Of a DNA stretch of 64,000 nt, positions 2,501 to 38,783 are shown in pieces (within the stretch, counting starts at the first letter, position 1; each line of letters starts with the position of its first letter). The translations under genes and the position numbers were made by a program. The stretch comes from Mobula hypostoma. Taxonomy: Eukaryota. The notes under the pieces were generated by a model. It saw only the letters and a list, made by a program, of their open reading frames with translations. It was not told where the DNA came from and did no database searches. The DNA lies in assembly GCF_963921235.1 (NCBI RefSeq), contig NC_086128.1, positions 26,722,001 through 26,786,000 on the forward strand, written 5' to 3'.

Positions 2501-2925
2501 TATCCCCCACTCTGGCCTCTTATCTCTTCTCCTCACCTGCCTATCACCTCTCCCTGGTGCCTCTCTGTCTTCCCTTTCCTCCCATGGTTCACTCTCCTCT
2601 CCTCTCTAGCCTTTTACCTTTGCCACCCACCACCTTCCAGCTATCTTCCTTCCTTCCCCGCCCCACCACCTTTTTATTCTGCCATCTTCCCCCCTTTCCT
2701 TTCCAGACCTAAAGAAGGGTCTCGGCCTGAAACATTGACTGCTGCCCAACCTGTTGAGTTCCTCCAGCATTTTGTGTGCGTTGCTCTGGATTTCCAGCAT
2801 CTGCAGAATCTCTTGTGTTTAAAATTTCATAACGTATGTCAGTGATTATAAACTTGAGTCTGAGAAAACCCTCCAGTGTACATCTGTAGACTCTGTAGCA
2901 TGGTGTGCGTGGGTCAGTGCTGGGG

Positions 2926-3009
2926 ATGCCCAGTTCCGAGCCGACAGCACCCACCCATCCGTCTGGCCAGGCTGGAGCAAGGGAGCAATTGTATCCTCCC
3001 ATGGCCCTG
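2926..3009 (+). CDS. DPP10/6-like candidate exon 1 ([28 protein letters not shown])
   Basis: gggATG start and CTG|gtcagt donor in phase 0, matching the phase-0 acceptor at 3117. No homology support, since N-termini are variable in this family. Confidence 0.45.
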
Positions 3010-6000
3010 GTCAGTTGTGGGGGTGGGTGTTTGGATATCTCAGCTTTAAGACTTCAAGGATGGGTGAGGGGAGGGAGACCTTGGAGAGCCTTACCCTTTG
3101 CTCTCTGCCACTGTAGGATCCAACAGAAACAACGAGTGGTGCTCCACGGAACTGGAAGAGCATCGGGATTGCGGTGTTGGTCATCAGCGTCATCCTGTCG
3201 CTGGTTATCCTCTCCATCAGCCTCCTGACTCCAGGTAACTGCCCCCATCCACGGCCCTGACATAGCCTGTGACCCCCGGCACCAGGTAGTTTCCCCCAAC
3301 CTTGCCCTGAATGTAACCTGTGGTCCCTAACCCCAATACTGATCCCCTAATGTAACCTGTGACCCCTGACCCCAAGTAACCTCCCAGACCCCACCCCTAA
3401 TGTAACTTGTGATCACTAACCTCTAATCCCCACTCTCCTCCCTTCTGACCCCAAGTAACTGCCCACAGACCCTTCTCTAAGATAACCCAACCACAATCCC
3501 CACCCCCCACCCCCAGGAAACCTGCCTTATCCCAACCATAACGTAACCTGTGATCCACTAACTTCTAACCCTCAATCCTCATCCGTCCTGATCCCAGATA
3601 AGCTCTCAGCCTCCCCCACTGACATAACCTGCAACCCCTACCCCTGCCACCTCACCTGTACTCCTAATCCCCACCCCTAACACTGATCCCTACCCTAATC
3701 CTTCTACACTCAACCCCAGTCACTGCATTGACCCCAAAAACCAACCCTTGCTCCCTTCCGAGGACCACATAGTTCCATCCCAATCTCTGGTGTGTGGGTT
3801 TCCCCCGTGGGCTCCAGTTCCCTCCCATGTCCCACTGACTTGCAGGGTTGATGGGTTAATTGGCTGTGCTGTAAATCCTTCCCCAGTGTTGGGGGTGAGG
3901 GGTAGAAGTGGGGTGGGGGAGAATGGAGTGGGATCGGTGTAGGTGGCTGGCTGATGGTCGGTATGGATTCGATGTGCTGAACGGCCAGTTTCCCAGCTGT
4001 ATTACTCGAGGATTTTCCCTACCGCCCTCCCCCACCCCCAGGCCCTGTCCCCAACCTCACCCTGACTCCCTGACAACCTTACCCTGAAGCAGACCCCACA
4101 AACCCTTCACCCACTCCTGCCCTGCCCTCATCCTGACACCACCGTTAAAAGCCCCGCACTCTAAGCCTCGACCCTTTCCAACCTCAACTTGACCTTACCC
4201 CTGACCCCTATCAACCACAGTCCTGCAGCCCCCTACCCTTTTACCTGACCACATATCCCCCGATCTCCGCCCTTAATGTCTCCTCTGAACTTTGCAAGCT
4301 ACCTCTCCCCTATCTCTTAGTCACCACCCTGTGTCTGACTTCTAACCCCTGACCCATGCTCTCCTACCCTCTTATAACTCTGCTTCCAACCCTGGCCTTT
4401 ACCCCTAACCTAACTCCCTCGCTCCCTTCTCCATAAGACAAGATAAGATAAGGACCTCCGTATTGAATGGGAACAAGGCAGAGTGGGTGGGGGAGGATTG
4501 CTGGGAATCCAGGGAAGGGAGAAGGGATTACAGAATGGAGGAGAAAAGATTTTCTAGGATCTTTACAACTCATGAAAGGAGGAGAGGGAGGCAGGGAGAA
4601 AATGGAAAAAGGCTAAGGGGAGGGGAAACAGGAGGGCAAGGAGGGGCAGAGGAACGAAAAGGCAGTTGACACTGATGTACTTCTCTGTCAGAGGATGAAT
4701 CTCCAGATCCCAGACCAAGGCTCACGCTGGATGATATCTGGGCTCCTAAGTTTCAGATCCACGACCCTGAGGTGAAGTGGATTAATGGTGAGTGAGGCCT
4801 TTACCTCATGGGCAGGTATTGGATCAATTTCTTCAGTAGGTGATGCACAGTTCTGGGGAAGAGGGGTCACTGAGGGAGTGTGAAGGAGATGAACCAGCCC
4901 TTGGAGTGTGTGATGGGACAGTGTGGAGGGAGATTCACTCTGTGTCTGACCCTGAGTGTGTGATGGGACAGTGTGGAGGGAGATTCACTCTGTGTCTGAC
5001 CCTGGAAGTGTGTGAGAGGACAGTGTGGAGGGAGATTCACTGTGTATCTGACCCTGGGAGTGCGTGATGGGACAGTGAGGAGGGAGCTTCACTCTGTGTC
5101 TGACCCCGGGAGTGTGTGATGGGACAGTGTGGAGGGAGATTCACTCTGTGTCTGCCCCTGGGAGTGTGTGATGGGACAGTGAGGAGGGAGATTCACTCTG
5201 TGTCTGCCCCTGGGAGTGTGTGATGGGACCGTGTGGAGGGAGATTCACTCTGTGTCTGACCCTGGGAGTGTGTGATGGGATGGTGTGGAGGGAGATTCGC
5301 TCTGTGTCTGACCCTGGGAGTGTGTGATGGGACAGTGTGGAGGGAGATTCACTCTGTGTCTGACCCTGGGGGTGTGTGATGGGACAGTGTGGAGGGAGAT
5401 TCACTGTTTCTGACCCTGGGAGTGTGTGATGGGACAGTGTGGAGGGAGCTTCACTCTGTGTCTGACCCTGGGAGTGTGTGATGGGATGGTGTGGACGGAG
5501 ATTCGCTCTGTGTCTGACCCTGGGGGTGTGTGATGGGACAGTGTGGAGGGAGATTCACTCTGTGTCTGACCCTGGGAGTGTGTGATGGGACAGTGTGGAG
5601 GGAGATTCACTCTGTGTCTGACCTTGGGAGTATGTGATGGGACAGTGAGGAGGGAGATTCACTCTGTGTCTGACCCTGGGGGTGTGTGATGGGACAGTGT
5701 GGAGGGAGATTCACTGTGTCTGACCCTGGGAGTGTGTGATGGGACAGTGTGGAGGGAGCTTCACTCTGTGTCTGACCCTGGGAGTGTGTGATGGGATGGT
5801 GTGGACGGAGATTCGCTCTGTGTCTGACCCTGGGGGTGTGTGATGGGACAGTGTGGAGGGAGATTCACTCTGTGTCTGACCCTGGGAGTGTGTGATGGGA
5901 CAGTGTGGAGGGAGATTCACTCTGTGTCTGACCTTGGGAGTATGTGATGGGACAGTGAGGAGGGAGATTCACTCTGTGTCTGACCCTGGGGGTGTGTGAT

Positions 6001-9000
6001 GGGACAGTGCGGAGGGAGATTCACTCTGTGTCTGACCCTGGGAGCGTGTGATGGGACAGTGTGGAGGGAGATTCACTCTGTGTCTGACCCTGAGAGTGTG
6101 TGATGGGACGATGTGGAGGGAGATTCACTCTGTGTCTGACCCCGGGAGTGTGTGATGGGACACTGTGGAGGGAGATTCACTCTGTGACTGACCCTGGGAG
6201 TGTGTGATAGGACAGTGTGGAGGGAGATTCACTCTGTGTCTGACCCGGGAGTGTGTGATGGGATGGTGTGGAGGGAGATTCACTCTGGGTCTGACCCCGG
6301 GAGTGTGTGATGAGACAGTGTGGAGGGAGATTCACTCTGTGTCTGACCCTGGGGGTGTGTGACGGGACGGTGTGGAGGGAGATTCACTCTGTGTCTGACC
6401 CTGGGGTGTGTGATGGGACCAGGTTATACCAATGCTTACTATCTGGCACCAAGGCCCAGTAATGTTTCTGCCTAGTGAATGACTGCAGGATCAAATGTGA
6501 TTGAACTGTTCCATCAGGTGATACAGTGACAATGCGAACGCCTGAGGGACATGTGATCAAACAGAGCATGACAACGAGGGAGATCACTTTACTCTTGGAG
6601 AACAGAATCTTTGTAAGTACACATATCTCTCCATTGAAACGTTGAGGTGGCCAATCCACCCGTCAAACTGGTTCTAGCCCTTCTTCCTGGTCTTCCACCC
6701 AGAGTTCAATACATTTCACCTCTCTCACTCTTTCCTTGAATACCCGCTTCCAAAGGCTCTCTGTCGTCCATCCAGACAACACATCTGAGATCCCAACAAT
6801 TTCTACAGGGATCAACACACGCAGGATGCTGGAAGAACTTAGCATGTCAGGCAGCATCTATGGAGGGATAGACGTTGGCTGACCTGCTGAGTTCCTCCAG
6901 CATTCTGCGTGTGAGTTGTTTCCGAGCGCGTATCACAACCTGGTGTGCAGGCTGCAATGCAGAGGGTTGAAAGAGGCTACAAAGGGTTGTAATTTACAGC
7001 AACTTTTTATTGTACTGCTGCTATAAAACTCTGGGGAATTTGTAAGAACATTGAGATAATTTAAGAGGTTGCCCTCCTCGAGGTGGTTCACTCTCCTCTG
7101 TCCTTGTAACTCCCACCCTGATGCTCTCCGTTCATTCCTCCAGGTTTCCCTCAAAGCTACGAAGTACAAGGTGTCTCCCAACCTGCTGTATATTCTACTG
7201 GCCTCCAATGTCACAGAGGTAGGGGTGCAAGAGGACAACTCCAGGCCTGGGATGCTCGGAACAGGAGCGGCTGAGTGGGGACTTGGCACAAGTGAAGTCA
7301 GTATGAAGGCCACACCTGGAAATGGGAGAATAGGACACAGCAGAACTTTAACCTAAATCCCGGGAGTGTGTGATGGGACAGTGTGGAGGGAGATTCACTC
7401 TGTGTCTGACCCTGGGAGTGTGTGATGGGACAGTATGGAGGGAGATTTACTCTGTGTCTGACCCTGGGAGTGTGTGATGGGACAGTGTGGACGGAGATTC
7501 ACTCTGTGTCTGACCCTGGGAGTGTGTGATGGGGCAGTGTGGAGGGAGCTTCACTCTGTGTCTGACCCTGGAAGTGTGTGATGGGACAGTGTGGAGGGAG
7601 ATTCACTCTGTCTCTGACCCTGGGAGTGTGTGATGGGACAGTGTGGAGGGAGCTTCACTCTGTGTCTGACTCTGGAAGTGTGTGATGGGACAGTGAGGAG
7701 GGAGATTCACTCTGTGTCTGACCCTGGGAGTGTGTGATGGGACAGTGTGGAGGGAGATTCACTCTGTGTCTGACCCCGGGAGTGAGTGATGGGACAGTGT
7801 GGAGGGAGATTCACTCTGTCTGACCCTGGGGGTGTGTGATGGGACAGTGTGGAGGGAGATTCACTCTGTGTCTGACCCTGGGGGTGTGTGATGGGACAGT
7901 GTGGAGGGAGATTAACTCTGTGTCTGACCCTGGGAGTGTGTGATGCAATGGTATGGAGGGAGATTCAATATGGTCCTAACCTGATTTTGCTTACTCTGGG
8001 AGGGTGCCAAGTTCCACTGTTGGATGAACAGATAAATGGATGGTGCACCCAGTGAGAGGTCCAAGATTCAGGAGCGATTACTGAACTGAGTTAATGGGTC
8101 AGAGATTTCAGAAAGAATGCAGTGACTTTCTGGAAGAAGGGAATATATCGTTCTATACCCCAGCTTGACTGAGCAACATTACCTCAGACATCCAGGCATT
8201 CCACACACTTCCACAGGCAGGGACAAGGCCATTTAACCCCGTTCCAGCCTGGTAGCAGGAACCCACGCAGGCTGAAACAGTTGAGGCAGAATGGATTTGA
8301 TTTGAATAGAGAGAGATTGAACAGTTGTCTTGGAAGGAGGGTATCACAGGGAGGGAATTAGAAGGAGGGTTTCAGGGAAGTAGGGTGTGGGAAGGGAGCA
8401 GGAAGGTCATTTTGTGGGAAGGTGTCACTGACTACTTGCCTTCTGTTTCCAGGTTTACCGCTACTCCTACATGGCCACGTACTCCATCTGCTGCGTTCAG
8501 ACCAAGTGAGTAACCACACACTTAACATTGCCCACCCAGCACGTTGCCAAACGCCTGTTAAGGCTCTGATCGTGAGCGCAGAGGTGGGCCCGAGGGTAGA
8601 TACACATCCAGCACTGAGAAGTCTCTTCTCTCTCACCCTGTCACCTCCAACACTCACTTCTTTACAGATCCGTTTGCAGGAGCAAATGAGATAAGCACCG
8701 CCCCTCCCACAGCGTGACACTCCCTACTCACCGCCCCTCCCTCAGCGTGACACTCCCTCCTCACCGCCCCTCCCACAGCGTGACACTCCCTCCTCACCAC
8801 CCCTCCCTCAGCGTGACGCTCCCTCCTCACCACCCCTCCCTCAGCGTGACGCTCCCTCCTCACCGCCCCTCCCACAGCGTGACGCTCCCTCCTCACCGCC
8901 CCTCCCTCAGCGTGACGCTCCCTCCTCACCGCCCCTCCCTCAGCGTGACGCTCCCTCCTCACCGCCCCTCCCACAGCGTGACGCTCCCTCCTCACCGCCC

Positions 9001-12000
9001 CTCCCACAGCGTGACACTCCCTCCTCACCGCCCCTCCCAGCGTGACGCTCCCTCCTCACAGCCCCTCCCTCAGCGTGACGCTCCCTCCTCACCGCCCCTC
9101 CCTCAGCGTGACGCTCCCTCCTCACCGCCCCTCCCACAGCGTGACACTCCCTCCTCACCGCCCCTCCCTCAGCGTGACGCTCCCTCCTCACAGCCCCTCC
9201 CTCAGCGTGACGCTCCCTCCTCACCGCCCCTCCCTCAGCGTGACGCTCCCTCCTCACCGCCCCTCCCTCAGCGTGACGCTCCCTCCTCACCGCCCCTCCC
9301 ACAGCGTGACGCTCCCTCCTCACCGCCCCTCCCTCAGCGTGACGCTCCCTCCTCACCGCCCCTCCCACAGCGTGACGCTCCCTCCTCACCGCCCCTCCCT
9401 CAGCGTGACACTCCCTCCTCACCGCCCTCCCTCAGTGTGACGCTCCCTCCTCACCGCCCCTCCCTCAGCACAGCACTCCCTCCTCACCGCCCCTCCCACA
9501 GCGTGACACTCCCTCCTCACCGCCCCTCCCTCAGCGTGACACTCCCTCCTCACCGCCCCTCCCGCAGCGTGACCCTCCCTCCTCACCGTCCCTCCCGCAG
9601 CGCGACCCTCCCTCCTCACCGACCCTCCCACAGCGTGACACTCCCTCCTCATCGCCCCTCCCACAGCGTGACGCTCCCTCATCAATGCCCCTCCCTCAGC
9701 GCGACGCTCCGTCCTCACCGCCCCTCCCACAGCGTGACGCTCCCTCCTCACCGCCCCTTCCACAGCGTGGCGCTCCCTCATCACCGCCCCTCCCTCAGTG
9801 CGACGCTCCCTCCTCACCGCCCCTCCCTCAGCGCGACACTCCCTCCTCACTGACCCTCCCTCAGCGTGACGCTCCCTCATCACCGCCCCTCCCTCAGCGC
9901 GACGCTCCGTCCTCACCGCCCCTCCCACAGCGTGACGCTCCCTCCTCACCGCCCCTCCCTCAGCGTGGCGCTCCCTTCTCCCTACCCCTCCCACAGTGAG
10001 ACACTCCCTCCTCACCGCCTCCTCCCTTCCCTTCCCTCGGTGGGCTTCCAGGCGACAGTCTGTGTCCAACAGCGGCTATCCCAGATTCTGTTGTTCCAGG
10101 TCTTGCTCTCAGCTCTGTGTACCTGGGGTGGGAAGAGCCCCACTGCAGTTCGCCGGCTGGGGGGCACGAGGGAGCCAGCTGGTGAGTGTTGGAGACAAAA
10201 TGCAGGGGAGAGGGAGGTCCGGGAGGTCTGCTTGTGAGGGTTGGGGACACAGTGTAGGAATAGAGAGGGAAAGGGAGGGAAGGAGGGGGAGCACAGGGGA
10301 GCCATCGGGTGAGAATTAGATATAGAACATAAAACATTACAGCATAGTACAGGTGTTTCAGCCCACGATGTTGTGCTGACCTCTTAACCTATAAGAATAG
10401 TCTAACCCTTCCCTCCTACATGGCCCTCCATCTGCCTATCTAAGAGTCTTTTAAATGTGCATAATGTATCTGGATCTACCACCACCCTGGCAGGGTGTTC
10501 CACACTCCCACCACACTGTGTACAGAACTCTGACATGCCCCCTATACTTTCCTTCAATCACCTTAAAATTATGTCCCTTTGTGTCAGCCATTGCCGCCCT
10601 GGGGAAAAGGTCTCTGGCTGTCCACTCTATCTATGCCCCTTATCATCTTATACACCTTGATCAGGTCACCGCTCATCCTCCATTGCTCCTAAGAGGAAAC
10701 CTTAGTTCAGTCAACCTGTCCTCACAAGACACGCTCTCTAATCCAGACAGCATCCTGGTAAATCTCCTCTGCACCATCTCTAAGGCTTCCACATCCTTCC
10801 AGTAACAAGGCGACCAGAACCAAACATAATGCTCCAAGCGAGGCCTAATCAGAGTTCTACAGAGCTGCAACATTACCTCACGGCTCTTGAAGTTAATCCC
10901 CCGACTCATGAAGACCAACACACCTTACACTTTCTTAACCATTCTTTGACATGGGAACTTTGAGGAATCCATGGATGTGGACAACACTGTTAAGAATCCT
11001 GTCATTGACCCTGTACTCTCTCAAGTTTGACCTTCCAGAGTGAATCACTTCATACTTTTCCAGATTGAACTCCATTTGCCACTTCTCAGCCCAGTTCTGT
11101 ATCCTATCAACGTTCCATTGTAAACTATAACAATCTTCTATCAACACCACCACCAATCTTTATGTTATCTGCAAACTTACAAACTCACCCTTCTACTTCC
11201 TCATCCAAGTCACTTATAGAAATCACAAAGATCAGTGATCCCAGAACAGATCCCTGTGGAACACCACTGGTCACCAATCTCCAGGCAGAATATGCTCCAT
11301 CTACAACCAACCTCTGCCTTCTGTGAGCAAGCCAATTCTGGATCCACACATCCAGTGCCTCCTGATTTTCTGAGTGAGCCTGCCAAGGGGAACCTTGTCA
11401 AGTGCCTTACTATACTCTATTTACACCACATCCTCTGCTCTACCTTCATCAATTTATTTTGTCACTTCTTCAAAGAATTCAATCAGAGCTGTGTAGCTTG
11501 GCCTACCCCTCACAAAGCCATGCTGACTACCCCTAATCAGACTATGCTTCTCCAAATGCTCATCAATCCTGTCTCTAAAAATCCTCTCTAACAGTTTTCC
11601 CACTACTGACATAATATTCACTGGTCTATAATTCCCAGGATTATCCCTATTTCCTATCTTTAACAAAGGAATAACATTTGTTATCCTCTAATCTTCTGGT
11701 ACAACTCCAGTGGCTTGTGAGGATGCAAAGATTATTGCCAAAGGTGCAGCAATCTCTTTCCTTACTTCCTGTAGTATCCTGGGATATATCCCATCCAGTC
11801 CTGCCTGGGGATTTACCTATGTCCTAAGGTTTTTCAAAAGTTCTAGCACATCCTCTTTCTTAACGTTGGCCTGTTTCATACTGTCCTCACATTTGTCAGG
11901 GTCCCTCTCACTGGTGAATACTGAAGCAAAGTACTCATTCAGGGCATCCCCTACCTCCTCCTCCAACTCCAGGCATGTTTTCTCTTTTATCCCTGATCAG

Positions 12001-15000
12001 TCATCCTCCTGTTGTTCACGTATGTGTAGAATGCCTTGGGGGTTTTTCCTTAATCCTACTCGCCAAGTCCTTTACATCCTCCTTCTGGCTTTCTTACATC
12101 CACTCTTCAGCTCCTTCTGGGCTACCTTGTAACTCTCTCGAGCCCTATCTTATCCCTGCTTCTTAAACCTTAAGTAAGCTTCTTTCTTCCTCTTGATGAG
12201 ATGTTCCATATCCCTCGTCAACCGTGGTTCCTTCACCCTACCAAACCTTTCCCTGCCCCACCTATCCAGAAACCCAGGCAAGTGCTCCCTAAACAACCTC
12301 CACATTTCTGTTGTAAATTTCCCTGGGAGAAAAGGAGATGGCTGGTATATTACAGGGAGACTAAGAGGCTGGGAGAAGGAGAGGGGCGACAGGGAAGCTG
12401 GGGACACAGAGCAGGGGAAGAAGGAGTCTTTGCTGGGAGTCTGATGGGATGGGAGAGGGAGAGGAAAGATGGGGGAGCCAGCTGGTGAGAGGTGGGGTTG
12501 GGACACACAGTGCAGCTGGAAAGGGAGAGTTTGAAGATTCAAGATTGTTTATTGTCATTCTTCAGTACGTGAGTGTAAAGGAGAACAAAATGATTGTTAC
12601 TCCAGATTTGATGCAGCATAAAAAACACAATAAATATAAATACGAAAGAAATCCTATGAAACACAGTGTTCAGATAACTGTGAGCGTGGCCGTATATACA
12701 AAATAAGCTAATATTCATACACTGATTATACTTACATAAAGTGACGCTAGGTGCAGGAGTATCTGAACATAAGGTGACTCTGACAGAAAGTGATGAAGTG
12801 ACAAAGTAACTCTTGACAAGAGGAACTCTGCTGGGTAGCAGCAGGACAAATGAAAACAGTAGGTCAGTGATGGTGCCAGTGTAGGAGTGTAAAGTGTTAG
12901 TGCATGGCGGGGTGAAGGGTGCTGAGGGGCTGTGGAGGGTGTAGTGTCGGTGGGGGTGGTTGGGGTGGGATAATGGGAGGAGGTGTTGATCAACCTGACC
13001 ACAGGGCCACACAGGGACTGAGGGGCTGGGAGAGGGACGATAGGGGAAACAGAGGAGCACAGAGGAGCCAGCTGTTGAGAGCTGGGGTTGAGAACAGTGC
13101 AGGGGGAGGGGGGAGAGGTTGGGACCCCATGGGGAGACTGAGGGGCTGGGAGAGGGAGAGGGAGGACAGGGAGGTGGGGGCATTTAGTGCAGGGGGGAGA
13201 GACAGAGCGAGAGGGAGGGGCTGGGAAAGGCAGCTCGAGGGAACCAGCTGTCTGGGAATCTCAGGGCGGCTGCTGGTAGAGACTGGTGTGGATTAGTACA
13301 GGCACGTAAACACCATGTGTGGAAGGGCCCCTTCCTGTGCAGTGTGACTCTGGGGTAAATGCCAGAGTGGGATGGAGGAAGTGACTGCAGTGACGTACCA
13401 CAGGGAGCTGGTCAGTTCCAGCACACAGTGCAGGTGCCAACTCTTCCAACTGAGGAGGCTTGTCCTTAGAAATCACTAGTAGCAGTAACTGTCCCCCTGA
13501 GACCAGGCCAGTGCTTCTGATCCCCGGATAGGGAGCACCCCCAGACAGGCTGTCCTCTGTACTGGGATCGCAGAACGTGGCTGTCCCCTGCTTCATACCA
13601 GTCTCCCCTCACCCACGCATCCTTGCTCAACAGCAGGGCAGCAGGCTCGCCAACGGCTGTGCCAACACTTATCCCATTCCTTCCCACCCCACTCCTCCTA
13701 GACCCTGCCCCTCACCCACACACACCGGGGGGAGCAGGGGTTGACAGGGAGAATGTTCTGACTCCACACACACACGATGCTGCAGGTCGGAATTGAACCC
13801 AAGTCTCTGCCCAGTGTGCACTAATACGCCAGGTAGTTAGTTAGGGAAGGCTGTAGGGGCTGGGAATGGTTTCAAAGATGGGGACACTTTGGGGTCAGTT
13901 GGTGAGCACAGAGAGTGAGTGTACAATTGAAATTACCCTGTTTATGATATCTCTCCTTTCCTGCTTCCCCCCTGTTTTTCCCTCTCCCTCCCTCTTCCGC
14001 TTTCCCTCACACTCTCTTGGTCTCATGCTTTCTTTCTATATGTTGTTCTGTGACAATCCTCTACCCCTCTCTCTCCCTCACCCTTTCTCTCTTTCCTCCT
14101 CCTCTTGCTAGCACCCTCCCTCTCCCTCCCCCAATCTCTTCATCTCTCTGCCTCACTGTTTCTTTCTGACACTCTCTACCTCCCTCTCATTTTTTTCTTT
14201 CATCTCTCACACTCTGCCATCTCCCCGTTCCTTGCTTTCTATATAACACACACACTCTCTCTCTCTGCCTTTATCTGCCTCTCTCTATTTTTCTGCCTTT
14301 CTCCATCTTCCACTCTCTCTCTCCCTCCCTCTCTCCCTTCAGGTTTATATCTTTGAGAACAATATTTACCACCAGCAGTCACCGACCAGTGTTGCCCAAC
14401 GCCTGACCTCCTCGGGGACTGAGGGCATTGTTTACAACGGGATTGCTGACTGGTTGTATGAGGGTGAGAGAGAGGGGTGGAGTGATGGAAGGAGAGAGAA
14501 AGAGTGACAAAGTGAGAGGGAGGAGGGAGGGGGAGGGAGAGGGAGAGGGAGGGAGCACTGTGCTGAGGGAGGGGCTGTGAGGAGGGAGCATCACCATGTG
14601 GGAGGGGCGGTGAGGAGGGAGCGTCACGCTGTGGGAGGGGCGATGAGGAGGGAGTGTCACACTGTGGAGGGAGCATCACGCTGTGGGAGGGGTGGTGAGG
14701 AGGGACCACCTCGCTGAGGGGGGCAGTGAGGAGGGAGTGTCATGCTGTGGGAGGGGTAGTGAGGAGGGAGTGTCACACTGTGGGAGAGAGCGTCGTGCTG
14801 TGGGAGGGGCGGTGAGGAGGAAGCACCGTGCTGTGGAAGGGGTGATGAAGAGGGGGTGCTGTGCTGTGGGAGGGGCGGTGAGGAGGGAGTGCCGTGCTGT
14901 GGGAGGGGGAAGGAGGAGGGAGCACAGCACCCAGAGATTAACCTGTCCTTTCCCATCACTGCTGCTCCAGAGGAGGTGCTGGGGACTTCAGCTGCCCACT

Positions 15001-17132
15001 GGTGCTCTCCTGATGGCGCATGGCTCGCCTTTGCTCAGATCAATGACACGCTGGTGCCCAAAATGGAGATACCTCACTATCTGGGCCAACTGTATCCCCG
15101 TGCTAAAATCTACCCCTATCCCAAGGTGGGTTAGTGCCCCTCAATCTCTGCCTCCCTCACATTGCCCCCTCCCTCTCTTTCTTCTCTCCCACTCTCCCTC
15201 CCTGTTTCTCTCACCTCCCCATTCCTCCCTTCTCTTTCTTCCACTCTCTCTCTCTATGTAACTCACTCTACTGCCCCTCTCCCACTACTTGGGTTTGACC
15301 CTGTGTTTTTTTTCCAGATGAGACAACCCCTTCCGTCTATCAGTCTCTTTGTGGTGAAGCTGTATGGACCAGCACACACCCTGCAGGTTCTCCCTCCCGA
15401 GGGCCTCCGGTTCAGGTAATCCCAGGCAGTGACATTAGTGGGGGAGCGGGAGCACAGGACTGATGGTGAATGATGCCTCCACATCGGGTTACAACAGTGG
15501 GGTGGGAAGAGAACAGTTACAGAACCAGGCTCCCCGAGATGAGTCTCCTCGGGCAGATTATCTGCATAGAGAGCAGGTCCACATTAGTCAACAGCCCCAG
15601 GGTGGAGGGAAGCCCCAGAGGAGGGTTATCCCAGTGTGGAGACCAGTTTTGTATTGGTAAACAGCTCTGGGGGAGGGGGAGGGGAGGTCAGTGTGGGTGT
15701 CAAAGTGTGATGACTATGTGACCCTCTCCCACAGTCAGTACTATCTCACCATGGTCTCCTGGGTGTCCAACACCAGTCTGGCAGTACGATGGTTAAACCG
15801 AGCCCAGAACGTTTCCCTCCTCACTGGGTGTGAGGTGACCACAGGGGCTTGTGTGGAGGTGAGATCCTCATCATCCACCCTCCATTTCCCTATTCCTCAT
15901 ATCCCTCCATCTGTCTCCGTCACTTACCTTCCCTCCATCTACCCATCCCTCATCTCCCTCCACTTGAACACCATCTGAACTGATTCCACACTCTGTGGGT
16001 CACTTTCAGGAACTCTACAACTCATGTTCCCAATATTTATTTATTTATTACTATTATTATGTTTCTCGTTTTTGTCTTTGCATTATTTGTTGTCTTTTGC
16101 ACACTGGTTGTCAATCCTGTCGAGTGCAGTCTTTCATTGATTCTATTGTGTTTCTTGTATTTACTGTGAATGCCCACAAGAAAATGTATCTCAGGCTGTA
16201 TATGATGACATATATGTACTTCGATAATAAATATACTTTACTTTGAACCTCCCCATCCCTCAACTCCCTCCATCTCCCTGTCCCTCATCCTCCTCCATCT
16301 CTTCATCCCTTACTCACACCCACAACTTTCTACCTGAGTTTATTGACATATCTCTCTGCCTTTTACAGAAGCACAAGACATCATCAGATGGCTGGCTGAG
16401 TAAACAGGTGAGCCTCCTGAGAATTCAGAAAGCAGTTCGGAATTATTTCTGTCACTAAAGGAATTTGCAGGTTGTTAGAGTCTGTCAGACTGTGAGACCA
16501 GTATTATTATTACTCTGGTGCTGGCAGGCAGGGAACTGATCAGGGGTGATGCTCCTTACAATCCATAGCAAGCAGCGATGCAGGGTGGTCTATGGTCCAG
16601 AGGTTCATTTTGCAGTGGGACGGGCTGGGACTGTAGTATTGGAGGTGTTAGGTAGCCCTCTGCCTCCTGGCTGAGTGAGTGTGAAGGAGTCCCAGGCCCC
16701 AACTGACTGACCATCTCTCTCTCCTGCAGGGTGAACAGCTGCTCTTCAGTCCAGACGGCAGCACCTTCTTCCTCACTGTGCCCACCCAACAAGGGGGTGC
16801 CGGGCGGTTCTGGCACTTGGCCAGGTTCACAGACAGGGTAAGGCAGGACACATTGTCTGGATAGCGTCTGCAGTTACCCTAGAGACAATCCCTGGTCATC
16901 TTCATTACCTCTGTCTCTCCCTCCTCCTCTCTCTGTCCTCTCCCTCCCTCACAATCCCTGTCACTCACCCTCCCATTCCCTGTCTTTGCCCCTCTCTCAC
17001 TCATTCTGTCCCACCTCCCTCCCTCTCACTCTTCCTCTCCCTCAACCTCACCCTCCCTCATTCTGCCTCCGCTAATCTCCCACCTCCTCACTCTCTCCCA
17101 CCCAGAGCCCATACCCGAACTGTCCCTCGCCC

Positions 17133-17176
<44 letters not shown>

Positions 17177-26100: not shown

Positions 26101-27205
26101 CACAATTATACCCTCAGTACTAATCAACAAGCTCCAAAACCTGGGCCTCTGTACCTCTCTCTGCAACTGGATCCTTGTCTTCCTCATCAGGAGACCACAG
26201 TCAGTGCAGATTGGAAATAACATCTCTTTCTCACTGACAATCAACACTAGTACACATCAATGATGCGTGCTTAGCCCACTGCTCTACTCTGTCTACAGTC
26301 ACGACTCTGTGGCTAGGCACAGCTCAAATACCATCGATAAATTTGCCGATGACACAGCTATTGCTGGCAGAGTTTCAGATGGTGACGAGGGGGTGTACAG
26401 GAGTGAGATCGATCAGCTGGTTGAGTGGTCTCACAACAACAAACTTGCACTCAACATCAGTCAGATCAAGGAATTCCTTGTGGACTTCAGGAAGGGGAAG
26501 TCGAGGGAACACACAGTAGTCCTCACCAAGAGATCAGCAGTGGAAAGGATGAGCAGTTCCAAACTCCTGGGTGTAACATCTCTGAGGATCTATCCTGGAC
26601 CCAACATATTGATGCAATTACAAAGAAGGCACAACAGTGGTGAAATTTCATTGGGAGTTTAAGGAGACTTGGTAATGTTACCAAAAACTCTCACAAATCT
26701 CTACAGTCGTGCCATGGAGAGCATTCTAACTGGTTGCATCACTGTCTGGTATGGAGAGATCACTGCACAGGATCGGGAAAAGCTGCAGAAAGTTGTAAAC
26801 TCAGCCAGCTCCAACATAGGCACTAGCCTCCCCAGTATCGAGGACACCTTCAAAAAGTGATCCCCAAAACGGCGGCATCCATCATTAAGGACCCCCATCA
26901 CCCAGGACATGCCCTCTTCTCATTGCTACCATCAGGGAGGAGGTACAGCAGCCTGAAGACAGTCAGGAACAGCTTCCTCCCCTCCGCTATCAGGTTTCTG
27001 AATGGATGGTGAACCCATGAACACCACCCCACTATTTTATTCCTTTCTTTTTGCACTATTTACTTAATTTTATTTCTTTCTTTCTTATTGTAATTTATAG
27101 TTTATTATGTATTGCACTGTACCGCTGCTGCAAAACATCAAATTTCATGACATATGTCAGTGATATTAAACCTGATTCTGATTTGGTGTGTGTGATAGAG
27201 AGATG

Positions 27206-27245
<40 letters not shown>

Positions 27246-30200
27246 TAGAGAGATGCTGTATGTGTGTGTACATACCTGTAACAGGAAGTTGTCTCTGTAG
27301 CCTATTAACTCCCTGCACACCATGTCTCTGAATACCCCAAGTTGCCCTGTTCCCCATCGGTGAGCTGGCACTTCCCCCATGTCCACACACGTTAACATAT
27401 TCCACAGCCAAACTGCCCTCTGCTCTGTCGATAACCCACCCCAACATTCCTCATGGGACCGACACTCGTGCTGTCACCAACTCTGGACTGTGACTCTGCC
27501 CCAGGCACCCCACTGGGAGCCGACACTGAGTGATTGTGGAACAGTACATCACAGGAACAGGCCCTGTCTGTGCCAAAATTTATCCTATCATGTTCCCCAC
27601 CCCTCCACCTGTCCATATGTCGGTTACTGGGTGGGTTTAATGGCCTCTTCCTGGGACGACAGCCTGCGTTCAGTGGGAGGGGTTACCTGGACATACGCTC
27701 GTGGGATTAGTGGGGGTGCAGTCCCAGAAGAGTTTGGTGTGTCTGAGTCCTCTGTCTCCTCCCTGTCACAGCTGCCACATTCTCCGAGAGGTACCTGGGT
27801 TTGTCAGCGCGACAGGACGAGAGTTATGTGGTGAGTGTGTACTGTAGTTGCTTCAGTGTGGGATAGTGAGGGAGGGGCGGTGAGGAGGGAGTGTGACACT
27901 GTGGGAGGGGCAGTGAGGAGGGAGTGTCGTGCTGTGGGAGGGGCGGTGAGGAGGGAGCATCACGCTGTGGGAGGGGCGGTGAGGAGGGGCGGTGAGGAGG
28001 GATTGTCACGCTGAGGGGGGGCGGTGAGGAGGGAGCGTCACGCTGTGGGAGGGGCGGTGAGGAGGGAGTGTCTCACTATGGGACGGGCGGTGAGGAGGGA
28101 GTGCTCTGCTGAGAGAGGGGTGGTGAGGAGGGAGTGTCACACTGTGGGAGGGGCGGTGAGGTGGGAGCATCACGCTGTGGGAGGGGCGGTGAGGAGGGAG
28201 TGCTCTGCTGTGGGAGGGGCGGTGAGGAGGGAGCGTCACGCTGAGGGAGGGGTGGTGAGGAGGGAGTGTCACGCTGTGGGAGGGGCAGTGAGGAGGGAGT
28301 GTCACACTGAGGGAGGGGCGGTGAGGAGGGAGTATCACGCTGTGGGAGGGGCGGTGAGGAGGGAGCGTCACGCTGAGGGAGGGGCGGTGAGGAGGGAGCG
28401 TCACGCTGTGGGAGGGGCGGTGAGGAGGGAGTGTCTCACTATGGGACGGGCGGTGAGGAGGGAGTGCTCTGCTGAGAGAGGGGTGGTGAGGAGGGAGTGT
28501 CACGCTGTGGGACGGGCGGTGAGGAGGGAGCGTCACACTGTGGGACGGGCGGTGAGGAGGGAGTGTCACACTGTGGGAGGGGCGGTGAGGAGGGAGTGCT
28601 CTGCTGTGGGAGGGGCGGTGAGGAGGGAGCGTCACGCTGAGGGAGGGGTGGTGAGGAGGGAGTGTCACGCTGTGGGAGGGGCAGTGAGGAGGGAGTGTCG
28701 TGCTGTGGGAGGGGCGGTGAGGAGGGAGCGTCACACTGTGGGAGGGGCGGTGAGGAGGGATTGTCACGCTGAGGGGGGGCGGTGAGGAGGGAGCGTCACG
28801 CTGTGGGAGGGGCGGTGAGGAGGGAGTGTCTCACTATGGGACGGGCGGTGAGGAGGGAGTGCTCTGCTGAGAGAGGGGTGGTGAGGAGGGAGTGTCACGC
28901 TGTGGGACGGGCGGTGAGGAGGGAGCGTCACACTGTGGGACGGGCGGTGAGGAGGGAGCGTCACGCTGAGGGAGGGGTGGTGAGGAGGGAGTGTCACGCT
29001 GTGGGGGGGCGGTGAGGAGGGAGCGTCACGCTGTGGGAGGGGTGGTGAGGAGGGAGTGTCACGCTGAGGGAGGGGCGGTGAGGAGGGAGTGTCACGCTGT
29101 GGGAGGGGCGGTGAGGAGGGAGCGTCACGCTGTGGGAGGGGTGGTGAGGAGGGAGTGTCACGCTGACGGAGGGGCGGTGAGGAGGGAGTGTCACGCTGAG
29201 GGAGGGGCAGTGATGAGGATCAGTGAGATGGGAGGGAGGAGGGAGCGATCCTGGAGCAGGGTGAGGAGGGGGCGATCGTGCTGTGGGAGGGTGTGAAGGT
29301 GAGGGAGCCAATGCAGTAGGAACACTTTAATGCAATGTGCCAGATGTGCTGTTCATTTGCAGAAAGCATCAGTCCTGGGGGAGGTGGAGAGGCTGAGGGG
29401 TAAAAGACTGCTCCTCGCTCACGGCACTGCAGACGGTAAGTTATATCGGGACAACAAAGCCAACAGCCCAGTGTGGCACTCAGAGTGGTGAAAGAGGGCT
29501 CTATTCTGGGAAGGGTGCAGAGAAAAGGCAATGTTCTGTGAGGGGCAGTGAGGAGGGAGGGCAGTGTTGTGGGAGGGGCAATGAGGAGGGAGCATCGCAC
29601 ATTGGGAGGAGTGGTGAGGAGGAGGGAGGGCAGTGTTGTGGAAGGGGTGGTGCTGTCTATATTCATGCAAGGGCTCTCTGTATAAATAGATAGTCTGTGT
29701 TCACTCATGGCCGGGATGTATGTTTGATAGAATAGCACTCTCAGTAAACCCCTCTCTTTCAGTACAAACCTGTCAATACACCCTTCCCTCAGTACACACC
29801 TCCCCTTCACTACACCACTCCCTCAGTACTCCACCTTCAGTACACTCCCCCCTCAGTACACCTGTCTATCAGTATAGCCCCTCCCTCAGTGCATCCTTCT
29901 GTCGGTCACTACCCCTCTCTCAGTACAGCACTGTTGACAGTACAACCTCTCTCTCTCTCTCTTTCTGACAGCCACTGTACACTTCCAGCACACAGCTGAG
30001 TTAGTTAAGCAACTGGTGGACACCAAGGCCAACTACACACTGCAGGTAGGGTGTGTGGGGAGAGCCTTTTTGCACGGCATAGTTAAACCATCATCGCTCA
30101 CGACCCCTGGGGCCATCGGGAATCACCTGATCCTCACTCCCTCGGCTGGTCCTCGGGCCAGGCATGGCTTGCCCCTCCTTGTCCATCTTCCTACATTTCT

Positions 30201-36200: not shown

Positions 36201-38783
36201 AGAAATTCCTCCCTCATCTCTGTTCTAAATAAATGTCCTTGTATTCTGAGGCTGTGCCCTTTGGTGCAAGACTCCCCCACTATAGGAAATATCCTCTCCA
36301 CATACACTTTATCTAGGCCTTTCAATATTAAATAGGTTTCAATGAGATCCGTAGAACATACAGCATTACAGCACACTACAGGACCTTTGGCTCACGATGT
36401 TGTGCCAGTCTTATAATCTACTCTAAAATCAATCTAATCCTTCTCTCCTGCATAGCTCTCTAATTTTCTATTATCCATGTCCTGATCTAAGAGCTTTTTA
36501 AATGTCCCTAATGTATCTGCTTCTACTACCACTCCTGGCACTATGGGTTAAAAACTACCTCGGCCACACCCCCCGATACCTTCCTCCAATCACCTTAAAA
36601 TGATGCTCCCTCATATTGGCCATTTCCACCCTGGGACAAGGTCTCTGGCTATCCACAAGATCTATGCCTCTTATCATTTTGTACACCTCCACCAAATCTC
36701 TTCCCTTGCTTCCTGTAGGAACCTTGGGTATATCCCATCTGGCCCTGGGAACTTATCTATCGTAATGTTTTTCAAAAGTTCCAGCACATCCTCTTCCTTA
36801 ATTTTGACATGTTACTAGCATATCAACTTGTTTTATGCTGTCCTCACATCAAACATCAAAGTCCCACTCAATGGTGAATACTGAAGCAAAGTAATGAGGA
36901 CTTCCCCTGTCTCCTCCGACCCCAGGCATGTTTCCTCCACTACCCCGATTGGTCCTACCCTCACTCTGGCCATCCTCCTGTTCTTCACATACGTGTAGAA
37001 CACTTTGGAGTTTTCCTTCATCCCATTCACCAAGGCCTTCTCATGTCCCCTTCTAGCTCTCCCAAGTCCAGCTCCTTCCTGGATACTTTGTAACTCTCTA
37101 GAGGGCTGCATGACCTTGGGTTCCTAAACGTTAAGTAAGCTTCTTTCTTCCTCTTGACCAGATGTTCCACATCTCTTGTCAACCATGGTTCCTTCGCCCT
37201 ACCATTCTTTCCCTGCCTCAATGGGACAAACCCACCCAGAACCTCCAGCAAGTGCCCCCTAAACAACCTCCACATTTCCGTTGTGTATTTCCCTGAGTAC
37301 ACCCATTCCCAATTTATGCTTCTCAGTTCCTGCCTAATAGCATCATAATTCCCACTGTCTGCTCCTATCTCTCTCCAAGGTTATGGTAAAAGGTCATGGA
37401 ACTGTCTCTGAAAAGCTCATCCACTGAGAGATCTGATACCTGACCTGCTTCACTGCCTAACACCAGGTCCAATATGGCCCCTCCTCTAGGTGGCCTGTCT
37501 GTGTATTGTGTCAGGAATCCTTTCTGGATATACCTAACAAATTCCACCTCGTCTAAACCTTTGGCAATAAGGAGTTGTCGATAAATATTAGGGAAGTTGA
37601 AATCACCCTTGACAACAATCCTGTTTTTTTTTGCTTTGCACCTTTCCAAAATCTGCCGCCCGATCTATTCCTCAGCGTCTCTTGTTACTATTGGGGCAGG
37701 AGGGTGGGTCTATAGAATACTCCCAATAGAGTGATTGCTCCCTTCCCATTTCTGACTTGCACCTACACTGACTCATTAGATGATCCCTCTACAACATCCT
37801 CCCTTTTTGCAGCTGTGATACTATCCCTGATTAGCAATTCCACTCCCCCCACCTCTTATCTCCCTCTCAATCCCTTTAATCCCCGGAGCATCCAGCAGCC
37901 ATTCCTGCCCTGTGACAGCCAAGTCTCCACACTGGCCACAGCATCATAGTTCCATGTACTAAGTTCATCATCCTTGGTCCTGATACTACTTCTATTAAAA
38001 TAGACACACTTCAACTGATCCCCACTGACTGAAGTTTTGGACTACCAACTTTCTATCCTTCCTGACAGTCTCTCTACATGCTGCATCTACCTGTACACCA
38101 ACAGCTCCATCCTCTGACCTATCACTCTGGTTCCCATCCCCCTACCAACAGCTCTTACAAATCTGCCCACAGGGATATTGGTTCCCCTCAAATTCAGGGG
38201 TAATCTGTCACTTTTCTACAGGTCATAACTTCCAATGATCCACAAATCTGAAACCCTGTCCCCCACACTAATTCCTTAGCATTCTTCTAAACTCCAGTGA
38301 GTACATGTCCAGAGCCATCAAAGACTCAAACATTAACCCTTTCATTCCTGTTATCATTCTTGTAAAACATCCCCTGGACCCTCTCTAATGCCTGTACACT
38401 AGGGGCCGAAAACTGCTCTCAATACTCCAAGTGTGGTATAAGGCCTCAGCATTAAATCCTTACTTTTAAATTGGTCCTTTCTAATATGCTGTACAGCTGC
38501 ATGTATCTGACAGCCCCCTGATGGGTTAAATCAGGGGCTGGTGGGAGGAGTCTTGCAGGGCTGTGGGGCACGAGCGTGACAGTGGGGGTTGTTTCATTCA
38601 GCGGGCAGGATAAGATTGGCAATAAGCACAAACTGGTTCTTGCATCTTTCTCCCCACCAGGTCTACCCAGATACAGACCACTTCTTCCGGACAGAGGGAA
38701 ACAGTCGTCACCTCCAGAAAACCATCGTCAGATTCTTCCAAGACTGCTTAACCAGCAGTGGGAAGAGAGCCAAGGAGGTGTAG
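2926..38783 (+). CDS. Inactive dipeptidyl peptidase 10/6-like type II membrane protein (Kv4 auxiliary subunit family), whole spliced gene, ~789 aa
   Basis: join(2926-3009 candidate,3117-3234,4692-4787,6518-6612,7144-7218,8453-8505,10100-10181,14343-14463,14971-15125,15318-15415,15735-15858,16369-16407,16730-16837,17221-17312,17986-18033,18494-18612,19503-19550,19865-19963,22193-22259,22639-22803,23162-23216,25383-25482,27772-27830,29363-29435,29972-30045,38661-38783). All introns GT-AG with compatible phases. Exons 2-26 total 2286 nt with no internal stop. Family motifs: [13 protein letters not shown] (TM), [63 protein letters not shown]. Confidence 0.93.
3117..3234 (+). CDS. DPP10/6-like exon 2 (juxtamembrane region + TM helix)
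   Basis: tgtag|[39 protein letters not shown]|gtaac. Confidence 0.93.
4692..4787 (+). CDS. DPP10/6-like exon 3
   Basis: [32 protein letters not shown]; cag/gtgagt. Confidence 0.92.
4902..6419 (+). repeat. 52-bp minisatellite array (~29 units)
   Basis: Unit gggagtgtgtgatgggacagtgtggagggagattcactctgtgtctgaccct, head-to-tail. Confidence 0.97.
6518..6612 (+). CDS. DPP10/6-like exon 4
   Basis: [32 protein letters not shown]; cag/gtaagt. Confidence 0.92.
6813..6918. mobile_element. Miniature hairpin version of the same foldback family
   Basis: caacacacgcaggatgctggaagaactt...gagttcctccagcattctgcgtgtgagttg is self-complementary. Confidence 0.75.
7144..7218 (+). CDS. DPP10/6-like exon 5
   Basis: [25 protein letters not shown]; cag/gtagg. 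Confidence 0.92.
7358..7967 (+). repeat. 52-bp minisatellite array (~11-12 units)
   Basis: Same unit as 4902-6419. Confidence 0.97.
8453..8505 (+). CDS. DPP10/6-like exon 6
   Basis: [17 protein letters not shown]; cag/gtgagt. Confidence 0.9.
8696..10019 (+). repeat. 33-bp CpG-rich minisatellite (C-rich strand on +, ~40 units)
   Basis: Unit ctccctcctcaccgcccctcccacagcgtgacg; translates as ([11 protein letters not shown])n. Confidence 0.97.
10100..10181 (+). CDS. DPP10/6-like exon 7
   Basis: [28 protein letters not shown] (cf. DPP10 LQYAAWGVQGQQL); cag/gtgagt. Confidence 0.9.
10325..12322 (-). mobile_element. CR1 LINE remnant
   Basis: [42 protein letters not shown]. Confidence 0.9.
14343..14463 (+). 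CDS. DPP10/6-like exon 8
   Basis: [40 protein letters not shown]. Confidence 0.95.
14551..14927 (-). repeat. 33-bp minisatellite, degenerate, G-rich on +
   Basis: gtgggaggggcggtgaggagggagcgtcacgct units. Confidence 0.9.
14971..15125 (+). CDS. DPP10/6-like exon 9
   Basis: [52 protein letters not shown]. Confidence 0.95.
15318..15415 (+). CDS. DPP10/6-like exon 10
   Basis: [32 protein letters not shown]. Confidence 0.93.
15735..15858 (+). CDS. DPP10/6-like exon 11
   Basis: [41 protein letters not shown]. Confidence 0.95.
16369..16407 (+). CDS. DPP10/6-like exon 12
   Basis: [13 protein letters not shown], 39 nt; cag/gtgag. Confidence 0.9.
16730..16837 (+). CDS. DPP10/6-like exon 13
   Basis: [36 protein letters not shown]. 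Confidence 0.93.
17136..17185 (+). repeat. (CT)n microsatellite upstream of the exon 14 acceptor
   Basis: ctctctct run. Confidence 0.9.
17221..17312 (+). CDS. DPP10/6-like exon 14
   Basis: [30 protein letters not shown]; weak donor AT|gtaaaa. Confidence 0.9.
17505..17890 (+). repeat. Degenerate purine-rich tandem repeat (core ggggtcacagagacaggga)
   Basis: About ten recurrences of gtcacagaga with variable G-rich spacers. Confidence 0.75.
17986..18033 (+). CDS. DPP10/6-like exon 15
   Basis: [17 protein letters not shown]. Confidence 0.92.
18172..18412 (+). repeat. 33-bp minisatellite, degenerate, C-rich on +
   Basis: ctccctcctcaccgcccctcc units. Confidence 0.85.
18494..18612 (+). CDS. DPP10/6-like exon 16
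   Basis: [39 protein letters not shown]; family C-x2-C...C...C pattern. Confidence 0.92.
19503..19550 (+). CDS. DPP10/6-like exon 17
   Basis: [16 protein letters not shown]; cag/gtaagt. Confidence 0.9.
19865..19963 (+). CDS. DPP10/6-like exon 18
   Basis: [33 protein letters not shown]. Confidence 0.9.
20122..22024 (-). repeat. 33-bp minisatellite (~57 units), G-rich on +
   Basis: Source of the spurious 588-aa and 599-aa ORFs. Confidence 0.97.
22193..22259 (+). CDS. DPP10/6-like exon 19
   Basis: [23 protein letters not shown]. Confidence 0.92.
22639..22803 (+). CDS. DPP10/6-like exon 20 (shortened)
   Basis: [55 protein letters not shown]; donor GA|gtacgt. Confidence 0.88.
23162..23216 (+). 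CDS. DPP10/6-like exon 21
   Basis: [18 protein letters not shown]. Confidence 0.93.
23320..24360 (+). mobile_element. Rex1/Babar-type LINE remnant
   Basis: [21 protein letters not shown]; degenerate 3' tail. Confidence 0.85.
24493..25147 (-). mobile_element. CR1 LINE 3' fragment
   Basis: Similar to the CR1 3' end at 55261-55980; another tail at 25627-25965. Confidence 0.8.
25383..25482 (+). CDS. DPP10/6-like exon 22 (nucleophile elbow; Gly in place of catalytic Ser)
   Basis: [33 protein letters not shown]. Confidence 0.93.
26055..27182 (+). mobile_element. Rex1/Babar-type LINE remnant
   Basis: [32 protein letters not shown]; tail ttaaacctgattctgat. Confidence 0.9.
27208..27244 (+). repeat. 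(GT)n microsatellite
   Basis: gtgtgt run. Confidence 0.95.
27772..27830 (+). CDS. DPP10/6-like exon 23
   Basis: [20 protein letters not shown]. Confidence 0.93.
27868..29290 (-). repeat. 33-bp minisatellite (~43 units), G-rich on +
   Basis: Same unit with variant blocks recurring; a short degenerate patch also at 29536-29653. Confidence 0.96.
29363..29435 (+). CDS. DPP10/6-like exon 24
   Basis: [24 protein letters not shown]. Confidence 0.93.
29972..30045 (+). CDS. DPP10/6-like exon 25
   Basis: [25 protein letters not shown]. Confidence 0.94.
30475..32585 (-). mobile_element. Rex1/Babar-type LINE fragment split by the Tc1 insertion
   Basis: ...ctcctaatgaaaTA[Tc1]TAtagctgctgg rejoins into sequence matching the reverse complement of ~58970-59020. 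Confidence 0.8.
30821..32412 (+). mobile_element. Tc1-family DNA transposon (DD34E, long IR/DR termini), full length but transposase disrupted
   Basis: TA target duplication (30819-20 and 32413-14); ~220-bp inverted termini CAATGCCTATAAAAAGTATTCACC...GGTGAATACTTCTTCTAGGCACTG; [46 protein letters not shown]-(34)-NPIE; frameshifted into two ORFs. Confidence 0.96.
33001..33280 (+). mobile_element. tRNA-derived SINE (V-SINE/HE1-like)
   Basis: A/B-box-like head (tagtgtagcggttag...ttcaattcc) and core tgtaaggagtttgtgtgttctcccgtgactgcgtgggtttc; relatives at 33535-33820 (-), 35270-35520, 53770-53935. Confidence 0.8.
35560..38480 (-). mobile_element. Cluster of nested CR1 LINE fragments including endonuclease-domain remnants
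   Basis: [38 protein letters not shown], several CR1 3' ends. Confidence 0.85.
38661..38783 (+). CDS. DPP10/6-like terminal exon 26
   Basis: [40 protein letters not shown] (TAG). Confidence 0.93.
   Translation, partial: VYPDTDHFFRTEGNSRHLQKTIVRFFQDCLTSSGKRAKEV

Follow-up and report, generated by a model that had tools for sequence, protein, structure and literature searches.

The locus described here raises the question of whether a dipeptidyl peptidase (DPP) family gene in the ray Mobula hypostoma is a DPP10, a DPP6, or neither of the two. The gene lies in a 64,000-nucleotide stretch of contig NC_086128.1 (positions 26,722,001 to 26,786,000), which is referred to below as the window. DPP6 (DPPX) and DPP10 (DPPY) are auxiliary subunits of Kv4 channels, and a review of the Kv4 complex counts "the two DPLP genes" (PMC3973911). 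In the literature that we searched by full text, no description of a third DPLP lineage was found; orthology databases may already separate it. An earlier note on this DNA had proposed a third lineage of the DPP6/DPP10 family, and this proposal held up: the lineage, which we call T, is split from the rest of the tree with 100/100 support, has a CNPY2/CS/PAN2 neighborhood, and bears a first exon and a transmembrane (TM) signature of its own. We consider it highly probable that the Mobula gene is the ray orthologue of lineage T and that T is an ancient, third paralogue of DPP6 and DPP10 in gnathostomes.

Structure of the gene in the window

DPP-family exons were first seen on the + strand in a motif scan and six-frame reading, which brought out the HGTAD motif, an exon for a transmembrane segment, and a C-terminal exon whose end is at 38783. 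The exons were mapped by tblastn guided by ray, shark, and lizard proteins (Hypanus, Chiloscyllium, and Zootoca, respectively), and the junctions were set by listing the frame-compatible GT-AG pairs at each one. The resulting gene comprises 25 exons at positions 3117 to 38783 (+), numbered 2 to 26, in which every intron is of the GT-AG type and the phases are consistent. The joined coding sequence of 2286 nt encodes 761 amino acids without a stop or frameshift; the product is 768 amino acids long if the alternative exon 20 donor at 22824 is used. The earlier claim of an intact gene of 25 to 26 exons with the DPP6/DPP10 phase pattern was thus borne out. The 25 core exons also agree with the pattern described for the DPLP family, a variable first exon followed by a common core of 25 exons (PMC3973911).

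All of the exons are on the + strand. Exon 2 (3117..3234) encodes the cytoplasmic juxtamembrane part and the TM helix, with the T-type TM signature; its acceptor lies directly after TAG and its donor is CAG/GTAACT. Tblastn matches bounded by GT-AG define exons 3 (4692..4787), 4 (6518..6612), 5 (7144..7218), 6 (8453..8505), and 7 (10100..10181), the acceptor chosen for exon 7 being the one that gives the Hypanus and Mobula protein. Exon 8 (14343..14463), placed in the same way, ends in DWLYE, and exon 9 (14971..15125), which was placed by a PDB match and GT-AG, carries EEVLG...PYPK. Tblastn and GT-AG also define exons 10 (15318..15415), 11 (15735..15858), 12 (16369..16407), 13 (16730..16837), 14 (17221..17312; the acceptor at 17221 agrees with the annotated ray proteins), 15 (17986..18033), 16 (18494..18612), 17 (19503..19550), and 18 (19865..19963). 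Exon 19 (22193..22259; 67 nt) was found by local alignment to shark and lizard proteins and has the acceptor CACAG/ and the donor CAT/GTGAGT. The hydrolase domain begins in exon 20 (22639..22803), where the DGRGSG region is degenerate and shortened; the Mobula and Hemitrygon models both use the donor at 22803. Exon 21 (23162..23216; tblastn, GT-AG) ends in GVYGK, and exon 22 (25383..25482; tblastn, GT-AG, and motif alignment) starts with GFGGF. They are followed by exon 23 (27772..27830; tblastn, GT-AG), exon 24 (29363..29435; tblastn and motif alignment), which carries HGTAD with the triad Asp retained, exon 25 (29972..30045; tblastn, GT-AG), which carries VHFQHTAEL, and exon 26 (38661..38783), which carries YPDTDH with the triad His retained and includes the stop codon.

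The annotated first exon of Mobula and Hemitrygon, which ends in MI[IV]THQNVSHSL, is absent from positions 1 to 3300 of the window, and the start codon that had been proposed at 2926 is therefore unsupported and doubtful. Exon 1 is upstream of the window. The region at about 2900 to 2970, a homologue of Hypanus exon 1b, has GC, not GT, at the homologous donor position. In-frame GT sites occur further 3' of the ATG at 2926 (CTG/GTCAGT and TGG/GTGAGG), and these are candidate donors only, of unsupported usage. The gene is compact, spanning 36 kb in the Mobula window versus 17 kb in sturgeon, whereas the DPP10 gene is very large; the Hypanus locus measures 102 kb.

The introns are rich in repeats. 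A 33-bp G+C-rich minisatellite family occupies 8696 to 10027, 20186 to 22016, and 27983 to 29218, as well as about 14500 to 14900 and about 17440 to 17860; on the + strand it is C rich at 8696 to 10027 and G rich in the remaining arrays, and the family is thus present in both orientations. The 1.8-kb array at 20186 to 22016 ends about 180 bp 5' of exon 19, which is skipped in NCBI models. A 52-bp minisatellite (92% matches) is present in intron 3 (4898 to 6419, 29 copies) and in intron 5 (7362 to 7967, 12 copies). The last intron, 8.6 kb in length, contains a Tc1/mariner-type transposase remnant at 31109 to 32180 (+) that consists of two open pieces of 153 and 229 amino acids in different frames, and reverse transcriptase/LINE-like fragments are found in introns at 23300 to 24400 and 25900 to 27000. 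In four RNA-labeled runs, one of them flagged "probably DNA," positions 23400 to 25170 showed very high contig depth at 90 to 95% likeness, as is characteristic of a high-copy repeat family.

Existing annotation of the gene

A protein search of 1.8 billion representatives with exon 9 (14973 to 15125) returned two Hypanus sabinus proteins that are 96% identical, together with many DPP10 and DPP6 proteins. A bacterial IPT/TIG protein from Agromyces that also came up in the exon search was discarded as a spurious match. The translation of the window is 100% identical to Mobula hypostoma XP_062893879.1 (574 amino acids) over exons 2 to 18, after which that model runs out of frame, and 100% identical to Mobula hypostoma XP_062893880.1 (195 amino acids) over exons 20 to 26. 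NCBI thus splits a single Mobula gene into two "DPP10-like" models. The guess in the earlier note that automated annotation might read "DPP10-like" was exact, the NCBI name being "inactive dipeptidyl peptidase 10-like." A full-length model of 770 amino acids exists in Hemitrygon akajei (XP_072927372.1), and the window translation is 93% identical to it.

The models differ at exon 19, which is skipped in Mobula hypostoma and in all Hypanus sabinus models, i.e., in two of three ray genera, and is included in the Hemitrygon model. A jump from exon 18 to exon 20 without the 67-nt exon 19 shifts the frame and leads to a stop within exon 20. The Hypanus isoforms are all truncated, at 558 amino acids or shorter.

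Predicted protein and fold

In the Hemitrygon orthologue, Pfam PF00930 (DPPIV_N) is complete, with 304 bits, and Pfam PF00326 (Peptidase_S9) scores 101 bits and covers profile positions 46 to 211 only, the first 45 being missing; both domains were also found on the two Mobula models. An AlphaFold model of the same orthologue (mean pLDDT, 78; pTM, 0.75) shows a TM helix at residues 25 to 49, a propeller, and a hydrolase fold. Its best structural match is human DPP10 (PDB 4wjl; TMt, 0.90; 46% identity), and the next are DPP6 (1xfd, 7e8b, and 7e8h), Kv4.2-DPP6S complexes included, at 42 to 43% identity; DPP4 follows at 28%. When exon 9 was compared with the PDB, DPP10 scored 56.6 bits, DPP6 53.2, and DPP4/FAP 31 to 35, and the exon 9 scores and structural-alignment identities (46% and 42% versus 28%) place the protein closer to DPP6/DPP10 than to DPP4/FAP. 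The modeled protein is a type II single-pass membrane protein with a predicted eight-bladed beta-propeller and an alpha/beta-hydrolase domain, the topology and architecture common to DPP10 and DPP6.

The nucleophile motif GKGFGGF spans the junction of exons 21 and 22. Gly replaces the catalytic Ser in this motif, and serine peptidase activity is therefore impossible. Ser is found at the nucleophile position in no aligned T, DPP6, or DPP10 sequence: other T orthologues have Ala or Gly, DPP10 has Gly like the ray protein, and DPP6 has Asp or Val. The triad Asp (HGTAD), the triad His (PDTDH), and the DWLYEEE motif are all retained in the ray protein, as in DPP10, where the last of these reads DW.YEEE. 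The gene thus encodes a protein of the DPP6/DPP10 type, with a DPP fold that is anchored in the membrane and catalytically dead. DPP4 and FAP, which are active S9B peptidases, share the overall fold and the 26-exon type of gene with T, but their catalytic Ser is intact and their TM region is different.

Divergence and constraint in the ray copy

The earlier description of a heavily diverged protein proved correct. The ray protein is 50% identical to sturgeon or gar T, its nearest non-ray relatives, 46 to 48% identical to DPP10, and 44 to 45% identical to DPP6; for comparison, identity is 72% between the DPP10 proteins of Mobula and bear and likewise 72% between sturgeon T and gar T. Unlike other T proteins, it also lacks about 10 residues near the family motif DGRGSG. 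The stem branch of the rays measures 0.84 substitutions per site, and ray T evolves about 10 times faster than ray DPP10, so the function of T in rays may be relaxed or changed.

It is conceivable, though in our estimation rather improbable, that the ray gene is decaying or being remodeled, with an unused hydrolase half and a skipped exon 19, so that its product would be a truncated propeller protein or a nonsense-mediated decay (NMD) target. This would fit the long stem branch, the shortened DGRGSG region and restricted Pfam S9 match, and the fact that exon 19 is left out, with a stop within exon 20, in all of the Hypanus isoforms and in the N-terminal Mobula model. RNA depth on exons 19 to 22 was zero, and only intronic repeats were matched, in the runs that could be used: six small runs, amounting to 0.01 of the sampled words, were listed, and the four labeled as RNA were used, as contigs only and with one flagged "probably DNA." However, exon 19 is in frame and has good splice sites, the 25-exon reading frame is open in both Mobula and Hemitrygon, where the model includes exon 19, and the hydrolase domain is predicted to fold.

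The distribution of substitutions also argues against decay. Constraint was judged by a conservation-pattern test of protein differences, which is not a dN/dS estimate. The near-invariant columns of the family are kept at 113 of 127 positions (89%) in ray T, compared with 131 of 141 in squamate T, 137 of 139 in teleost T, and 127 of 127 in batoid DPP10; 14 family-invariant residues are altered in ray T. The 55 differences between Mobula and Hemitrygon favor columns that are variable in the family (Mann-Whitney P = 0.0027), avoiding the conserved ones. Since the reading frame is open in both genera and the differences fall on variable columns, the sequences argue against free decay and in favor of a protein that evolves fast but is still under purifying selection.

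Phylogenetic placement

We gathered 55 named proteins from cluster look-ups and from searches in which the Hypanus protein, gar DPP6, and the sturgeon relative served as queries. A maximum-likelihood tree of 56 rows was inferred with IQ-TREE (LG+C20+F+G4 PMSF); it is unrooted and has neither DPP4/FAP nor an invertebrate outgroup. The tree consists of three groups: DPP6 (100/100), DPP10 (100/99), and T (24 rows; 100/100 versus the rest). The DPP10 clade includes DPP10 of Callorhinchus, Amblyraja, Chiloscyllium, Hemitrygon, Hypanus, and Mobula hypostoma. The gene in the window falls in T, together with bichir, sturgeon and paddlefish, gar, Amia, teleosts, lungfish, salamanders, and squamates, and nests in neither DPP10 nor DPP6. 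The monophyly of T accordingly depends on the root lying outside T. Within T, rays form one subclade; lungfish, salamanders, and squamates form another; and bichir, sturgeon and paddlefish, gar, Amia, and teleosts (Danio, Takifugu, and Oryzias) form the third. These subclades match the three major gnathostome groups, and the tree leaves their mutual order unsettled.

T and DPP10 are both present in Huso, Pleurodeles, Hemitrygon, Hypanus, Mobula, Anguilla, Megalops, and Clupea and, in an earlier 54-row tree, in Podarcis muralis; sturgeon and Amia also have DPP6 besides T. T is not a lineage of "basal" fishes alone, since it occurs in nearly all teleosts, zebrafish among them. The best 120 hits with either T query included no T member of any mammal, bird, turtle, frog, shark, skate, or chimaera, a distribution that is consistent with loss from these groups. 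Of the true dpp10 and dpp6 genes that were to be sought elsewhere in the genome, Mobula has a separate DPP10 copy, and a search with gar DPP6 returned ray-finned fishes only.

Anguilla and Megalops have a second "DPP10-like" pair, which falls, on a long stem (0.46), outside the group formed by DPP10 of all other gnathostomes, including sharks (98/94), and has an MNQTA-type first exon. The pair stems either from a teleost duplication followed by rapid evolution or from a fourth old paralogue of which it is a remnant.

First-exon and transmembrane signatures

T proteins share a single conserved type of first exon, MIATTQQNMTT... or MIATHQN(M/V)TT..., which can be summarized as MIAT[TH]QN(M/V)(T/S). 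The ray version is MI(I/V)THQNVSHSL. This first exon is present in the Mobula and Hemitrygon proteins (MIITHQNVSHSL and MIVTHQNVSHSL, respectively) and in 20 other T proteins. It was found in none of the DPP6 and DPP10 proteins compared, which begin with MNQTA... or MTAxKEQ....

The TM segment offers a second signature. In T it reads GIGIA plus LSLVIL, whereas in DPP6 and DPP10 the almost invariant sequence is IAIALLVIL.VCSLI; the segment encoded in the window is of the T type. It is identical to that of DPP10 at 18 of 29 positions, keeping the RNWK and LLTP flanks, but the near-invariant core is altered and the conserved Cys is missing.

Gene neighborhood

A canopy-family (CNPY2-like) gene at 41709..44786 (+) begins 3 kb downstream of T in the window. 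It was identified by tblastx with the DUF3456 gene that lies beside the Huso orthologue, and Pfam PF11938 is found on two of its exons. Tblastx with fugu citrate synthase (CS) gave no match anywhere in the window, including beyond 46000. Of the CNPY2-CS neighborhood claimed by the earlier note, CNPY2 is thus in place downstream of the gene, and CS did not turn up in the window.

Comparable gene orders are found around the orthologues. In Huso huso, an LETM1_RBD gene is followed by T, DUF3456 (canopy), and citrate synthase (Citrate_synt); in Hemitrygon, T is followed by DUF3456 and Mob1/phocein; and in Amia, T is followed by DUF3456. T lies between an RhoGAP+C1 gene and citrate synthase in Takifugu and after PAN2 in Podarcis muralis. 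Since the neighborhood is shared by sturgeon, Amia, fugu, and lizard, the gene did not arise by a recent duplication specific to rays.

In humans, PAN2, CNPY2, and CS are neighbors on 12q13.3, and DPP6 is located close to CNPY1 and EN2 on 7q36. T sits in the PAN2/CNPY2/CS block, which corresponds to human 12q13, in a position that mirrors that of DPP6 beside CNPY1, and it is apparently missing from mammals; DPP10, in contrast, lies in a 2q14-like block. The parallel between the DPP6-CNPY1 and T-CNPY2 linkages provides a clean added marker of 7q36/12q13 paralogy. T probably arose before the split of cartilaginous and bony vertebrates. Because the tree is unrooted, the view that T is a whole-genome-duplication copy rests on paralogon logic.

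The synteny and the signatures bear directly on whether the ray gene could be a DPP6 orthologue that evolves fast and was misplaced outside the DPP6 clade through long-branch attraction. This we hold to be very unlikely. No chondrichthyan DPP6 was recovered with the gar query, and in an approximately unbiased (AU) test, uniting the rays with DPP6 cost 35.4 log-likelihood units and was only weakly rejected (P = 0.031). However, the rays remain in T, with an SH-aLRT of 100, after removal of squamates, hagfish, and other long branches. The ray gene has the T-specific first exon and TM motif, and the window encodes HGTADA, not the DPP6-type HPTADEK. The CNPY2/CS synteny is common to T of sturgeon, Amia, and fugu, and sturgeon and Amia have DPP6 as well. 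In addition, DPP6 exons have been reported in the elephant shark genome (PMC3366920).

Still less plausible is that the gene is the ray DPP10 orthologue or a ray- or chondrichthyan-specific DPP10 duplicate, as the NCBI name, the slightly better match of single exons to human DPP10 than to DPP6, and the Gly at the catalytic Ser position could suggest, because the batoids Mobula hypostoma, Hypanus, and Hemitrygon each carry another gene within the DPP10 clade, the genes next to it are CNPY2/CS, unlike the neighbors of DPP10, both the first exon and the TM segment are T-type, and AU tests rejected uniting the rays with chondrichthyan DPP10 (log-likelihood loss, 100.7; P = 4.6e-55) and with all DPP10 (loss, 34.9; P = 0.0029).

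Names and possible function of lineage T

The orthologues of the gene in lineage T are already in public databases under DPP10 names; the finding is one of comparative genomics, and no new kind of system is described. The T genes of teleosts, Amia, sturgeon, and bichir bear the name "inactive dipeptidyl peptidase 10," and those of rays, lungfish, salamanders, and squamates are listed as "DPP10-like." Orthologues annotated as DPP10 or DPP10-like include Hemitrygon XP_072927372.1, Huso huso isoform X1, and Lepisosteus W5MB80; further ones are a Danio rerio isoform X2 model, a Takifugu rubripes isoform X1 model, and a Podarcis muralis DPP10-like X2 model. They resemble the ray gene in clade, CNPY2/CS/PAN2 neighbors, and first-exon and TM signatures. 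The teleost names are inverted: the "inactive dipeptidyl peptidase 10" of Danio, Takifugu, and one Clupea gene is T, whereas the teleost orthologues of human DPP10 are mostly labeled "DPP10-like" (cyprinid examples are 74 to 76% identical to Megalops DPP10). Danio "dpp10" is only 48% identical to bear DPP10.

The TM region of DPP10 suffices for Kv4 binding and gating effects (PMC4873792). By analogy, T, like DPP6 and DPP10, would bind a Kv4-type channel through its TM segment and, once bound, would tune the trafficking and gating of the channel. That T in general acts as a Kv4 modulator has, on this analogy, at best an even chance; for the ray copy, we would put it lower. A further reading, which we offer tentatively, is that T may constitute a third class of channel auxiliary subunit with an invariant cytoplasmic N terminus of its own (MIATTQQNMTT...), one that modulates Kv4 or another channel in a manner unlike that of DPP6 and DPP10. 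Such a class would extend to zebrafish, medaka, fugu, lizards, and salamanders. It would follow that the teleost "dpp10" is not the orthologue of human DPP10 and that the true orthologue is the gene labeled "DPP10-like."

The distribution of T points to repeated, independent loss, and the lineage exposes a systematic naming error in automated annotation. DPP10 is a locus for asthma and neurodevelopmental disorders, and studies that use zebrafish "dpp10" in place of the human gene may address the wrong gene. With a third gnathostome-wide paralogue, the A-type current of fishes, salamanders, and lizards may make use of a subunit that is absent from the mammalian model.
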